NCBI GenBank assembly: GCA_963924565.1
Contig: OZ004608.1
Coordinates: forward strand, 12,710,001-12,774,000
Source of the DNA: Ascidiella aspersa
Taxonomy: Eukaryota
Length of the DNA: 64,000 nucleotides
Direction of reading: 5' to 3'
The notes beneath the pieces were generated by a model that had not been told where the DNA came from, searched no databases, and saw only the letters and a list, made by a program, of their open reading frames with translations. The position numbers and the translations under genes are program-made. Positions within the stretch are counted from its first letter, which is position 1. The number at the start of each line of letters is the position of its first letter. This document shows positions 1-30,420 of this stretch, piece by piece.

Positions 1-3000
1 TGTTTTGTGAACGAGAAAAGTTGGTCTTTGATCGGAATCACGTCTCACGGGTTCGAATGCGCAAGATCCAACAATCCTGGTGTCTACTCTAGGGTGGCAA
101 AGTTCAGCTCATGGATTAGTCAAAGTAAACTTATATACTTTATGCTTGTTTGGAATTCCTTGAATTTAAACGTTTCCTTAAATTAAAACAAATGTGATTT
201 TGCAGTTTAAAATATAGGCCCTGTATGGTTAACCTGTTCCAAATGACCTATTCGGATAAACTCTTTGGAGATACTGATACTGTACATATTTATAAAAATA
301 TAATTTTAGATATACCGACACCGTATACCAAGTTTTGACTATATACAATTTATTACAATTGTAAGTAAAAAAATACAATAACATTTTTTTACATTGACGT
401 ATTTTATAACGTAAGTTTCATGCTGTTTTAAACAAATAAAAGCGTTACATCTGTTTCGCAGAAATGTCCACCAGCAGAACTACAGGTAAGTGTTATTTTA
501 ACAAGTGAAAAATCTTAAAATTACCGAATTTTATTACGTCTTATCAAATTTTAGTTGATTACGATATTTGTACCGCATCCACCATCACTGCTGCAACTGG
601 AACAATTTCGTCTCCAAACTATCCATCAAACTACGCAATTAACCTAAATTGCTGTGTGGACATTACTACGACATCTGATAAGGTAAGAAAAATAATAAAA
701 ATCTCAAACACTTTGTTTTCTTGTTACCTGTTACGATTATAAGTGCGTAACTACTAAGGTTCTTGCAATGAGGTTTACCGACTTCGTCTTGGAAAGTCAC
801 GACGAGTGTTCCTATGATTCACTCCAAGTCTATGACGGGACCACGCTAGTAAGTTAAATCTAAAAAAAGATTCTATATATATTCAACGAACCATTTCTTT
901 TTACTTTGTTTCGCTTTCACTTATAATTTAAAATTACCTTTTTTGATTCACTTCACAACTGTTAGTCAATTATATTTACACTATACTTCGTAGTTTGCGT
1001 ATTTAATTTGCAGTACGCAAGCCGGGCGTTTTGTGGGACGTATTCGCCGCGTAATTTTACTTCCCACAACTCGTTGGTAAGGCTACATTTTGTGAGTGAT
1101 TCGAACGTCATCTCTAAAGGATTCTCGATCAGTTGGACAGCTCAAGGTTCGTAAACCACTTTACAGTAAATTTTATGTTTTGAAAAAGAACATTGCTGTT
1201 TACAAGTGTTAGCTTCTAAATATAACTATTTTAAACAATAATTTAAATTTACTGTGTGCAGAAGTTGATTTTTTCATTCATAAATGATGTCAAAGAATAA
1301 CGAAAACTATAAAGAAAGTCTTACTGTTCTAAACTTATATTTGGTATTCCTGACAATATTTTACGCTTTGCAGGGTAACATAATAATTATCAACAACATT
1401 TAATTCGTCACTTTAACAGCCAGATGTGCTGACACCGAGTTCACTTGCTGGAACGGCGTTTGTATTCCAGTCAGCCAGCATTGTGACGGAACAAAGCAAT
1501 GTACCGACGACAGTGACGAAATAGAATGCGGTTCGTTGTTCGAATTATTTTCACAGAAAGCAGGGCGATTGCTTTTCCGATGCTTGCAATAGTAATGCGT
1601 ATTTTATTTTACAGTTCAAAGTGCAACGAGCAATGACGTGTGTGGAAAAGTGGCGACTGCTCCCAGTTTCTTGTGGGTAAGTTATTTATAGTCGTGGTCC
1701 AAAATAGCAGTGGTGTAATGACTTAAGTCATTGACTTGACTTAAGTGCACTTAAGTGCACTTAAGTCACTGTTTTCATATGACTTGACTTGACTTAAGTC
1801 TTTTGACCAAAATGACTTGACTTGATTTAAATCTTTTCGAAAAATGACTTGACTTGGACTTAAGTCATTATGTCAAATAACTTGGAATTAAATTAAGTGT
1901 TTTTCATTAAAATTTATTTTAATTTTTGCACATTAAACACTTTAAGTGCTGTATATTGCTGCTTACGATCGGACAATTTTACCAATTTCAATAGTTTAAC
2001 AATTTACTTTTATGTCAATGACATGACTTGAAATTGACTTGCTCTCATAATGACTTGACTGGGACTTGACTTGGGCAACCGATGACTTGGACTGGGACTT
2101 GACTTGTTATTTTCGCAAAAGACTTGACTTGGACTTAAGTTATTTCAAAATGACTTGTTTACAACACTGCAAAATAGTGTAAGATTAGTCTAAAACAGTG
2201 GTGCATCACAGGGGAGGAACGACCAGTTATTTCTCTAAGAGGCACAAGCACTACAACAATGTTTGTTTTTTTGAATTTTTTTATGATGTTCGCTACTGTC
2301 AGGCTTTCTTCTGTCCTACATGTTTTTCACAAAAACTGAACTTGGAGAACTTTACCTTACTCGCTGTGCTACCTTACAAAAATGAATTGCGTCTCTGAAA
2401 TTTTTGGCAAAATACTTTTGTAATATCTGATAGAATGCATAAAGCATAGGGCCATTGCAAAGCGGGGGCGAGATAGATATAAATATTAAAACCGGAGTCC
2501 TTAAAGCCCAAGTATTTTCCAGTTTGTGACAATCCTTTGAACTTCGAAATCCTTCAAACGTTTACCTGTAGAACCTAAAAGAAATGCAAGAATTGTCACC
2601 TGCTTAAACATTTTCAAAGGTTGTGTACTAAAATCCACTCCGGTCGTACCGGTTTAAACTTCTTTTTACACACTGTCAAACAATTTTCCAGATCTGACGT
2701 CACACTTTTTGCTATCCTCATTGCCTTTTCACCCTTTTTTTTCTCATTGCCTTTTTTTTTCAATGTGCCAAGGCCTTTCGAAATACTACTTTCAGGATCA
2801 CAGGATTGTCGGTGGTCAGAATGCACAAGCGGGCGCCTGGCCTTGGCAAGTGCGACTTTCTGTTTCAAAAGGCGGAAGCACCTATTTGTGTGGTGGCTCG
2901 ATCATTAACAGCCAGTGGGTGGCGACAGCGGCGCATTGTACGCATCGGTGAGTGCTATCTGGTATTTTAAAACGGTATAAATATATCCATAAGTAGCCTA

Positions 3001-27500: not shown

Positions 27501-30420
27501 TATTTTTAAACACTACATCAACTAACCATGCATTAATACACTTCGGTTTCTTCGTTTAATGATTATGGCCGCTATTACAAAGGCCGTCTACCAATAAAAG
27601 GTGTATTGAACCACTTGTTTGCCGCGAACATCTTGGATCAAAGGCGTAAAAATTGAAGTTTGATTTATTTACCTTTTTCGGCAATCTTTTTTAAACCACT
27701 ATAGTTGTTTTTCAAAATCGCCGCGTTTTTGTTTTCTTAAAGTTTTATTTAACATTTAATCTATTACAATTCAATAATTTTCAATGTTATTGATGGCATA
27801 ACTACAAAACGTATTTTGTAAAAACCAAACCACCTTGGAAGTTACCCAAGCATTGAATACTGTAATGCGCAGACAAAGGAAACACGTAAAATTATTCAAC
27901 TTTAATAATAATAAATAGATGTAAACTCAACATTTAAGCTTATTGAAATATACTATGTTGGATACCAGGTAATGTAAACCGTGTTCACTGCCTTTTAGTA
28001 AACATAATTGCCGAGTCCTTTATAATACAACCAACACGCCATAATAAAGTGTAGGACAGATATCATTTTCTTATGTGCCCCAGTCTAGAGGTTGTGGTTC
28101 CGAAAGGTTTCATAACGTTTTGTTCCTTACTGCACAGCTTCGGACGGCGCCCAGCCCGATTACCTAAACCAGGTCCGACTTCCGATCCTGACAAACACGG
28201 AATGCGCAGCGGCGATCCCCGCCGTCACCATTTTGTCGTCGCAATTATGCGCCGGCAGCATCGCCTATGGTGGCGTGGACACATGCCAGGTGAAATGTCG
28301 ATATTGGGTTAATCCGTATAGGCCTAGTTGTTTGTAACTGCCAGTGTTGTAAAAGAGTTTTTTGAAAATGACTTAAGACCCAGTCACGTTACTCGTAAAA
28401 TAACTTAAGTCCAAGTCAAGTCTTTTTCAATAAATGACAAGTCAACTCCCAGTCTAAGTCATCGGTTGCCAAAGTCAAGTCCCAGTCAGTTAATAGTTAG
28501 CAAGACCCCTTCAAGTCGCACCCTTATCACAAAAATAAAACTCTGAATTATGAAAACTGGCAAACTCCTCCGATTATGAGCAATTCCTCAAGTAAAACAC
28601 ATAGACGCAACATATAGCAAGCAAATTGCAGTGTTGTAAACAAGTCATTTTGAAATAACTTAAGTCCCAGTCAAGTCATTCGTAAAATAACTTAAGTCCA
28701 AGTTAAGTATTTTTGAATAAATAACAAGTGAAGTCCCATTCCAAGTCATCGGTTGCCCAAGTCAAGTCCCAGTCAAGTCATAATTAGAGCAAGTCAACTT
28801 CAAGTCCAGCCCTTGTCAAAAAAAATAAAACTTTAAATTATGAAAACCAGCAAACTCCTCCGATTATTATGAACAACTCAAGTAAAAAATAACATAAAAG
28901 CAGCATATTACAAGCAAATTCTTTTATGTTCAAAGATTGGGATAAATAACGCAATTTTATAAATAATTGCTTAATTAAAACAAATTATTTTAACCCAAGT
29001 CATTTATCCAAATGACTTAAGTCAAGTCAAGTCATTTGCCCAAAAGACTTAAGTCAAGTCAAGTCATTCTGCTCAAAAGACTTAAGTCAAGTCAAGTCAT
29101 TTAAAAACAGTGACTTAAGTGCACTTAAGTCAAGTCATTGACTTAAGTCATTACAACACTGGCAAATTGTTTTATTTGCAAAGATTAGGATAAATAACGC
29201 AATTTTATAAATAATTGCCTAATGAGAACAATTTATTTTAACCCAAGTCATTTGTCCAAATGACTTAAGTCAAGTAATTTTGCCAAAAGTCATTTGAAAA
29301 CCGACGCACTTAGTTCAAGTCATTGGAAACCAATTTTTAATTAAATTGTTTCTTTCTTACGCTGGATGGTTTAGCCAGTTTTGACGATGTAGGTTTTACG
29401 ATATTTTCAGTAGAACCAAAAAGCGACGCCGCATCGTAACCTCACGTCTACAACTCCTCACTTTAAACGTAAATGCATTTAGACAAAAAATGCCTTTCTG
29501 GGATAAATAATATGAAAACAAACTCTCAAAGCTTAAAATATTTATAGGGAGGTATTTTATGTTTTTAATTCTTGCGGTAACCCTAATGGGAATATTTTGG
29601 CCCATCAAGGCACTTGAAAACTATATTTTTTACCTCGTTACAGAGTTTTAAGGGTATTAGCAAAACGCGCGAACATTGGCTCTGGCTATCTACAACAGGT
29701 CTGTTAGCGTAATTTATCTTAAAACCAATATGCAAAAATGTTTAGGGCGATTCCGGCGGACCTTTAGTTGTTCTTGTTGGTGAAACAACGTGGTACATAC
29801 TTGGAATTACGTCATATGGTTCGGGTTGTGCATCACCGAATAGCCCAGGTGTCTACACACGAGTCTCGTCGTATAACTCTTGGATTGAAAGTAGGTTGAC
29901 AAAAATTGATTTAAAGCGGCTTCGATATTGCAAGTAAAGTTATTTACAAGACTTCTCTAGTATTACAGATAGTGTACAAAAAGAGTCAAAGGGTTTGACA
30001 CTTAATTTATTTTTTTAATCTAATTAAGGATTTCCGAACCTTGACATTTTTTTCCAATATCAACTTTTTTAAAAAAAGTATCGTAATCCTAAAAAAAAAA
30101 AACGACTTCTCTTTCTATGCTCAAATAAGCGAAATGAAAAATTAAAACCTTCAAAGCTAATTTGTCCGTGTTATCAACACAAAACTGGCTTTTTGATGAA
30201 TTAACCTTTTAATGTAAATATCTTAGCGTTAGATCGCAAACCATGACTGATATTCTTTCTATCCGATATAACCGGACATCCTCAAATTTAAATGTAATTT
30301 TTACTTACCTTTAATTTCTTTTCAGCCGCCACATCGAACGCATCTACCACTCGCAAAGCGGTGTGTTTTTGGTTGGCAGAAGTTTTGCTGTTCCTAGCAT
30401 TGTTTAGTTTCAGTCTCTAA
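21502..30420 (+). CDS. Complete secretory-pathway CUB-LDLa-trypsin-like serine protease with a predicted GPI-anchor signal (about 477 aa, 13 coding exons)
   Basis: Exons 21502-21550 ([16 protein letters not shown] signal), 21830-21886, 23135-23253, 24151-24240, 24447-24579 (CUB), 24923-25033 (LDLa), 25210-25271 (QCGK..FSW), 26082-26254 (DPR-IVGG..WPWQ..AAHC), 27007-27108, 27339-27484 (FDIGVV), 28138-28289 (VDTCQ), 29746-29890 (GDSGGP), 30326-30420 ([31 protein letters not shown]). All phases match; total 1434 nt. Confidence 0.92.
23497..23836. mobile_element. hAT-type MITE
   Basis: TIRs cagtggttctcaacc / ggttgagaaccgctg. Confidence 0.75.
28342..29325. mobile_element. Older GACTT MITE with a younger copy of the same family nested at 28629-29161
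   Basis: The inner copy has TIRs cagtgttgtaa / ttacaacactg and perfect TSD gcaaattg; the host sequence resumes collinearly after it. Confidence 0.85.

Follow-up and report, generated by a model that had tools for sequence, protein, structure and literature searches.

The locus described here raises the question of what is encoded by a run of trypsin-like protease modules that are joined to CUB and LDLa domains, and of how such a run came about. It lies in the ascidian Ascidiella aspersa, at positions 12710001 to 12774000 of contig OZ004608.1 (referred to as C2) of a 308.6-Mb genome, a stretch of 64,000 nucleotides that is called the window below; its G+C content is around 35% and its genes are divided into short exons. 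An original prediction, made from the letters of the sequence, had seen in positions 1-30420 four trypsin-type domains on one strand and had proposed a self-activating protease system at the cell surface. We consider it likely that the window represents the 3' end of an array of secreted ascidian CUB-LDLa-trypsin zymogens that arose by lineage-specific tandem expansion, and that it includes the 3' two-thirds of a chained pair of modules (A-B), a decaying copy (C) and an intact single-module gene (D).

All searches were made exon by exon, against Pfam, a protein library, solved structures and the genome. The splice sites of all three modules contained in the window were read by hand and then verified by script. 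The wider array was mapped by searching the exon pieces of module B singly against the window and 160 kb of upstream sequence.

The tandem array

The window is the downstream (3') end of a larger array. Around 17 CUB-(LDLa)-protease modules are found over around 165 kb, all on the + strand, between approximately -134.6 kb and +30.4 kb, where negative positions are upstream of the window; a look at the upstream sequence, which the original prediction had recommended, thus reveals an array far larger than the window. Nothing related was found from the start of the array out to -160 kb in the 40-kb stretch that was checked. The order is Y1, Y2, X and then units 1 to 4. Module X stands alone, is intact and has a signal exon of its own. 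Unit 1 reads A-B-C+ and has no mucin-CCP cassette, unit 2 reads A-B-mucin-CCP-tail followed by C, unit 3 has an additional B copy (A-B*-B-mucin-CCP-tail, then C), and unit 4, which is the unit of the window, consists of A-B-mucin-CCP-tail, then C and then D. At the level of protein pieces, the B copies are 86-100% identical to one another, A is around 72% identical to B, and C, D and X are around 40-55% identical to B.

The array is evidently young. Units 2 to 4 share 95-99% DNA identity, introns included, and two of the copies outside the window, otherwise near-identical duplicates, carry disabling changes: the SP2 exon of B*, near -41.4 kb, contains a stop and a deletion, and a frameshift is found in the SP4 exon of the C copy near -21.6 kb. 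These same features, together with the broken frame of C in all of the derived units and with transcript variants that are unlike the B copy of the window (both described below), would also be expected if the window were mostly evolutionary debris or an assembly artefact, made of uncollapsed haplotypes or young duplicates, with only one or two functional genes across the entire array. We regard this as unlikely. The units differ in structure: unit 3 carries the extra B*, unit 4 is preceded by an insert of 16 kb, and unit 1 is without the CCP cassette. Haplotigs would not be expected to look like this. The copies of A, B and D have also retained their open frames, along with their splice sites and catalytic residues.

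At the head of the array (C2:12575400-12590400), Y1 and Y2 are CUB-LDLa-protease modules with dead catalytic sites. Y1 has GDFGAP and no Asp189, and Y2 has TSAQC in place of His57 and DKGGP in place of Ser195; they may be pseudo-proteases or decayed copies. Elsewhere in the genome, LDLa exons that are 50-69% identical to that of module B are found at C2:14712892-14774682 and C3:18054864, and these probably mark more members of the protease family.

Module structure and catalytic residues

The features of the window are collected in Table 1. The four trypsin-type domains of the original prediction are all present on the + strand, although the fourth, that of module A, contributes only its last exon to the window. 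AG and GT are found at all splice sites of modules B, C and D, and the phases are consistent inside each gene. The exon lengths of module B are 128/90/133 nt for CUB, 111 nt for LDLa, 62 nt for the linker and 152/111/152/143/148 nt for the protease; those of module D are 119/90/133, 111, 62 and 173/102/146/152/145 nt; and those of module C, which has neither LDLa nor linker exon, are 116/90/133 and 155/102/146/152/145 nt. The predicted sharing of exon lengths (90 and 133 nt for CUB in B, C and D; 111 and 62 nt for LDLa and linker in B and D) therefore holds.

Table 1. Positions of modules, exons, repeats and domain matches within the window (nt, nucleotides; an arrow marks an exon end or a cleaved bond)
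Feature	Position	Strand	Remarks
Module A, last protease exon (SP4)	-23 to 124	+	GDSGGP...WISQ; phase-1 donor caaa↓gtaaac
Putative 24-nt linker mini-exon (MSTSRTT)	462-485	+	Phase 1 to 1; from sequence only
Module B, CUB exons	555-682, 759-848 (90 nt), 1014-1146 (133 nt)	+	Pfam match, splice sites
Module B, LDLa exon	1420-1530 (111 nt)	+	Six Cys, DDSDE, Pfam match
Module B, linker exon	1615-1676 (62 nt)	+	Motif CGK..AP.F.W just before activation site
Module B, protease exons 1-2	2796-2947, 3691-3801	+	First exon with DHR↓IVGG and AAHC
Module B, protease exons 3-5	4016-4167, 4857-4999, 5489-5636	+	Asp102; Asp189 (VDSCQ); GDSGGP
Thr-rich (mucin-like) exon	6297-6419	+	Phase 1 to 1
High-copy repeats (transposon debris)	6531-8930		Intron before Sushi exon
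Sushi/CCP exon	8949-9143 (195 nt)	+	Phase 1 to 1, four Cys
Candidate last exon of AB (predicted)	9552-9730	+	Phase 1; Thr-rich, hydrophobic stretch, stop
Gene C, CUB exons	13682-13797, 13943-14032 (90 nt), 14208-14340 (133 nt)	+	Pfam match; third exon ends in phase 1
Gene C, protease exons	15206-15360, 15619-15720, 16145-16290, 16622-16773, 17496-17640	+	Triad and Asp189 intact
Gene C, last exon	18314-18438	+	Rearranged, without hydrophobic end
Gene D	21502-30420	+	12 exons, intact single module
Gene D, signal exon	21502-21550
Gene D, CUB exons	23135-23253, 24151-24240, 24447-24579
Gene D, LDLa exon	24923-25033
Gene D, linker exon	25210-25271
Gene D, protease exons	26082-26254, 27007-27108, 27339-27484, 28138-28289, 29746-29890
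Gene D, last exon	30326-30420		GPI-signal-like end before stop
Pfam CUB (PF00431)	509-739, 1008-1154, 13636-13815, 13943-14116, 24094-24264		Five exon pieces, above cut-off
Pfam LDLa (PF00057)	1404-1589, 24880-25038		Exon scan; E 3.6e-10 and 2.2e-9
Pfam Trypsin (PF00089)	2658-2948		First protease exon of module B; E 1.9e-15
Pfam Sushi (PF00084)	8975-9151		E 4.2e-7

The DDSDE motif is found in both LDLa domains. The protease exons other than the first of module B align to module B and to solved S1A proteases. The catalytic triad (AAHC, D(V/I)AL/DIGV and GDSGGP) is intact in B, C and D, and also in A, most of which lies upstream of the window. As had been predicted, the three activation sites conform to D-[H/N/P]-R↓IVGG, reading LW-DHR↓IVGG in B (2796), DNR↓IVGG in C (15206) and SW-DPR↓IVGG in D (26082), and the three complete domains have Asp189 in the S1 pocket, in VDSCQGDSGGP (B), IDTCRGDSGGP (C) and VDTCQGDSGGP (D). 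Gly216 and Gly226 are visible by eye only in the last protease exon of module B (SYGFECA and PGVY).

Gene AB

A signal exon encoding MATILAFL(I/T)IGSQLLATQ and ending in a phase-1 donor is conserved before all four A copies. It is found a few hundred bases upstream of A, to which a 1.7-kb insertion is added in the copy of the window, and gene AB of the window would therefore start near -7.0 kb. The SP4 donor of module A (124) and the first CUB acceptor of module B (555) are both in phase 1, and the 430 bp between the two modules contain no signal exon but only the optional 24-nt exon, which keeps the frame whether it is used or skipped. Since B has no signal exon of its own and the phase-1 sites match, B would be secretable only as part of A-B, which is thus predicted to be a chained two-module polyprotease with its signal exon upstream of the window. 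Module B in turn ends at 5636, the end of its SP4 exon, with a phase-1 donor (caaa↓gtaaga). The intron between its linker and SP1 exons carries, at 1708-2157, a dispersed repeat of around 450 bp, of which dozens of copies with 78-91% identity occur on at least nine chromosomes.

Module B is followed by a mucin-like exon and a Sushi exon, the latter with a Pfam match, four Cys and a conserved Trp. The closest copy of the Sushi exon, at C6:6.386 Mb, is 91% identical to it. Unit 1 lacks both the Sushi and the tail exon, and the two share 84-91% identity with a gene at C6:6.385 Mb, from which it follows that the cassette was captured from an unrelated gene. The C6 gene (C6:6384501-6389500) is the likely donor of this Sushi-plus-tail cassette; it is a member of a family with over 100 near-identical Sushi/CCP exons, most of them in one 0.6-Mb cluster (C5:2.57-3.21 Mb). 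The repeats that fill the intron before the Sushi exon have a depth 100-1000 times that of their flanks in all runs.

The 3' end of AB is harder to place. The C6 paralogue of the candidate tail exon is 88% alike and reads on past the AB tail stop, and identity between the two is 82-89% throughout, in exons, intron and downstream DNA alike, such that selective constraint is not discernible. The hydrophobic stretch of the candidate exon could equally be a 57-nt T-rich intron (9624-9680), and there is no AATAAA or ATTAAA within 800 bp after its stop.

Gene C

The third CUB exon of gene C ends in phase 1, and its SP1 exon (15206) starts in phase 0, directly after an in-frame TAG. A direct splice between the two consequently reads G-stop. 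An alternative donor or acceptor to rescue the frame was looked for, and there is none, as the TAG borders directly on the SP1 exon. Gene C is broken in frame in all three derived units. Its counterpart in unit 1, C+, keeps the LDLa and linker exons, in an interval where the C of the window has a deletion, as well as a GPI-like (glycosylphosphatidylinositol) last exon, and thereby shows the ancestral state of C. Both C+ and the C copy at -56 kb end in Ser/Thr-rich sequence followed by GFLLFGVFSSLIVAFVH(L/S)-stop. A poly(A) signal is found 111 nt after the stop of the window's C. From its structure, gene C appears to be a decaying copy that has lost LDLa and linker and is out of frame, so that one of the four domains of the original prediction sits in a broken gene: the C domain retains its catalytic residues, but the gene does not form a single frame.

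No credible signal exon is found within 4 kb upstream of C, and none is found before C+. Signal-peptide candidates upstream of C were rejected, among them MKNVFLSILVLLILT at 10663, which lies in a repeat that is copied at 12797-13456 and has no phase-1 donor. The two repeat copies between AB and C (10051-10698 and 12797-13456) are 74% identical, and it is their open reading frame that mimics a signal peptide. As C+ has no signal exon, it may form the third unit of an A-B-C+ protein, comparable to the three-unit proteins found in Styela and Clavelina. The most economical account is that C was severed from A-B when the mucin-CCP cassette was inserted, and decayed afterwards.

A different view of the same region is that AB splices past its Sushi exon into the CUB exons of C, to give an A-B-mucin-CCP-CUB product with a premature stop at the junction of the third CUB exon and SP1. 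All of the junctions concerned are in phase 1, C and C+ are without a credible signal exon, and C+ directly follows B in unit 1, as in the three-unit proteins just mentioned; the candidate tail exon, moreover, has neither a poly(A) signal nor coverage in the transcript data described below. Such a transcript would, however, have a premature stop far from its 3' end, and the first CUB exon of C begins one residue before the first CUB Cys, like that of the signal-preceded D (116 and 119 nt, against 128 nt in A and B). We therefore think it quite improbable that AB continues into C, and prefer the reading of C as a separate, decaying copy.

Gene D

Gene D is the one intact single module of the window. 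Its C-terminus consists of SNAS..RK followed by a 20-residue hydrophobic tail that runs to the stop (mean hydropathy 2.2), and an AATAAA lies 47 nt after the stop. The claim that the module is used both chained and alone thus stands in outline, with A to B compatible in phase and structure and D provided with a signal and a GPI-like end, and with the correction that the polyprotease starts upstream of the window. Membrane tethering is suggested for D by its sequence pattern; for AB it is not confirmed, the candidate tail exon having neither X3 coverage nor a poly(A) signal behind it.

Transcript evidence

Runs X3 and X4 were aligned to positions 3731-9730 of the window. The type of X3 is unrecorded; it is read as RNA on account of its exon-only coverage and a GT..AG joint. 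X3 confirms the junction from 3801 to 4016, with a loose end reading CACTTCCAAT, and that from 4167 to 4857 (depth 199). Its contigs are bounded at 4857-4999 and 5489-5636, and one ends exactly at the Sushi donor, 9143, with no mismatches and a depth of 77. The pattern of depth over the Thr-rich exon is consistent with expression. On the candidate tail exon the depth of X3 is 0, a hole that is not proof; the exon begins in a simple repeat. A word search with the Sushi exon for spliced transcript fragments found nothing. The only X4 reads on the aligned positions fall in the high-copy repeats, and most of these run on into unlike sequence.

Several points weigh against our reading of the window. 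X3 and the B copy of the window disagree at eight variant sites; for seven of these the X3 letter is present in at least one paralogue, and no single paralogue fits all three exons. This mismatch means that expression is shown for the B type and not for the window copy. RNA run X4, of which around 6% was read, has no reads on the exons of the aligned stretch. The expression of the window's A-B, C and D, as well as the chaining of A to B, is argued from gene structure and homologues. The GPI anchoring of D is a judgement of pattern, AB has only a predicted 3' end, anchor and transmembrane exon, and the units with 95-99% identity could in part be uncollapsed haplotypes of the assembly.

How the products might work

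The products of the family would start with a signal peptide, followed by between one and three CUB-LDLa-trypsin units. At the C-terminus there would normally be a Ser/Thr-rich stalk and a hydrophobic signal of the GPI type. Each protease domain would be made as a zymogen and activated by a cut after the Arg of F-x-W-D/N-x-R↓IVGG. The Cys encoded by the linker exon would link the CUB-LDLa propart to the protease through a disulfide bond, as happens in chymotrypsinogen and membrane serine proteases. Active domains are expected to cut after Arg or Lys, from Asp189, Gly216 and Gly226, and the CUB and LDLa domains may act as exosites that bind substrates or partners, by analogy with CUB2 in enteropeptidase. 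The anchor would serve to keep the enzyme on the cell surface, as the pattern suggests for D and as a candidate exon might allow for AB.

In the cascade that the original prediction put forward, membrane-tethered modules, encoded by one gene or by neighboring genes, would cleave the D-x-R↓IVGG sites of one another and of themselves. Every activation site has Arg at P1 and every intact domain has Asp189, several domains occur on one polypeptide or surface, and the conservation of F-x-W-D/N-x-R↓IVGG across ascidians suggests a common activator. Autoactivation is known from matriptase and from some other membrane serine proteases. Against this, Arg/Lys↓IVGG with Asp189 is the S1A default and does not by itself amount to mutual activation, most such zymogens not being autoactivating; one of the four domains sits in a broken gene, modules Y1 and Y2 are catalytically dead, as is the Styela protein's third domain, and the anchor of AB is a prediction. 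A cascade is possible but we consider it unlikely and do not favor it, since the P1 Arg and Asp189 from which it was drawn are common to most S1A zymogens. As a speculation to which we give little credence, (CUB-LDLa-trypsin)n proteins might form self-contained, surface-tethered activation relays, in which shared sites are cut on the same or neighboring chains, dead units act as regulators and capture of the Sushi domain adds partners, for instance in fertilization, tunic formation or immunity.

What the locus does offer is a curated gene structure for a family of multi-unit serine proteases that occurs across the ascidians and has gone unstudied, and a very young, still-changing array in which unit duplication, module loss, dead domains and Sushi capture present exon shuffling in progress. 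It is useful for annotation; no new mechanism is involved, and the protease chemistry and domain types are ordinary.

Ascidian relatives and known systems

The combination of domains, which the original prediction did not recognize as a named family, is in fact already predicted in other ascidians, with no functional characterization in the papers searched, and the array of the window appears to be a further member. The protein library was searched with the first protease exon of module B, and the 150 hits were ranked by summed score. Fish polyserases, which have no CUB or LDLa, topped this ranking; the ascidian relatives emerged when exon pieces were mapped on the 150 hits. Exon-piece mapping and Pfam find the repeated CUB-LDLa-protease unit in Styela clava, Clavelina lepadiformis, Phallusia mammillata and one metagenome contig, with the pieces in the same order on library entries P0024, P0140, P0167, P0178, P0179 and P0180 and Pfam counts of 2-3 each; relatives that match more loosely are present in Ciona savignyi, a crinoid and amphioxus. 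The ascidian relatives are around 35-65% identical in exon pieces, and none has a Sushi domain. Their source names are 'uncharacterized', 'TMPRSS9-like' and 'ST14-like', and full-text literature searches found no paper on an ascidian (CUB-LDLa-trypsin)n family.

The linker motif CGK..AP.F.W-x-x-R↓I(V/I)GG is common to the Styela, Clavelina and Phallusia relatives. In Styela clava, XP_039274225 (LOC120348165, 'transmembrane protease serine 9-like'), among others, shares signal peptide, unit order, motif, Ser/Thr stalk and hydrophobic C-end; the Styela protein has three units, two extra N-terminal CUB domains and a dead third protease. In Clavelina lepadiformis, CAK8680120 and a 1455-aa three-unit 'TMPRSS9-like' isoform share signal, unit order, motif, stalk and hydrophobic C-end; these have two or three units and a Cys-rich module before the GPI-like end. 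In P0140 and P0178 this module (LCYQCDG...CNG) is found within the C-terminal 110 residues or so, between stalk and GPI-like end. It is perhaps of the Ly6/uPAR type, and nothing comparable is found in the copies of this genome. The 'suppressor of tumorigenicity 14-like' protein of Phallusia mammillata, the record of which is a fragment, shares unit order and motif only.

Among better-known systems, polyserase-1 (TMPRSS9) and other polyserases also carry several S1A domains per chain, some of them inactive, and TMPRSS9 has an LDLa domain. TMPRSS9 differs in being a type II protein with an N-terminal anchor, no CUB and adjacent proteases, whereas here there is a signal peptide and a CUB-LDLa propart for each protease; A and D both begin with short signal-peptide exons of the cleavable type. 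The ovochymases, including HrOvochymase of Halocynthia roretzi, are likewise secreted polyproteases, in which CUB domains are combined with two or three domains of trypsin type. HrOvochymase processes the vitelline-coat protein HrVC120 and is the one ascidian polyprotease with a known role (PMC9265791); its order is protease-CUB2-protease-CUB3-protease, with no LDLa and no C-terminal anchor, while each unit here is CUB-LDLa-protease. GPI-anchored S1A proteases of the prostasin/testisin type have no CUB or LDLa propart.

Among solved structures, the first protease exon most resembles plasma kallikrein, factor XI and TMPRSS2, and the last most resembles the enteropeptidase light chain. Enteropeptidase and matriptase have CUB and LDLa directly before a trypsin-like domain that is activated at Arg/Lys↓IVGG, and the stem of the ascidian family resembles this business end. 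They differ in having a type II anchor, a SEA domain (plus MAM or SRCR) and a single protease, whereas SRCR and SEA are absent here.

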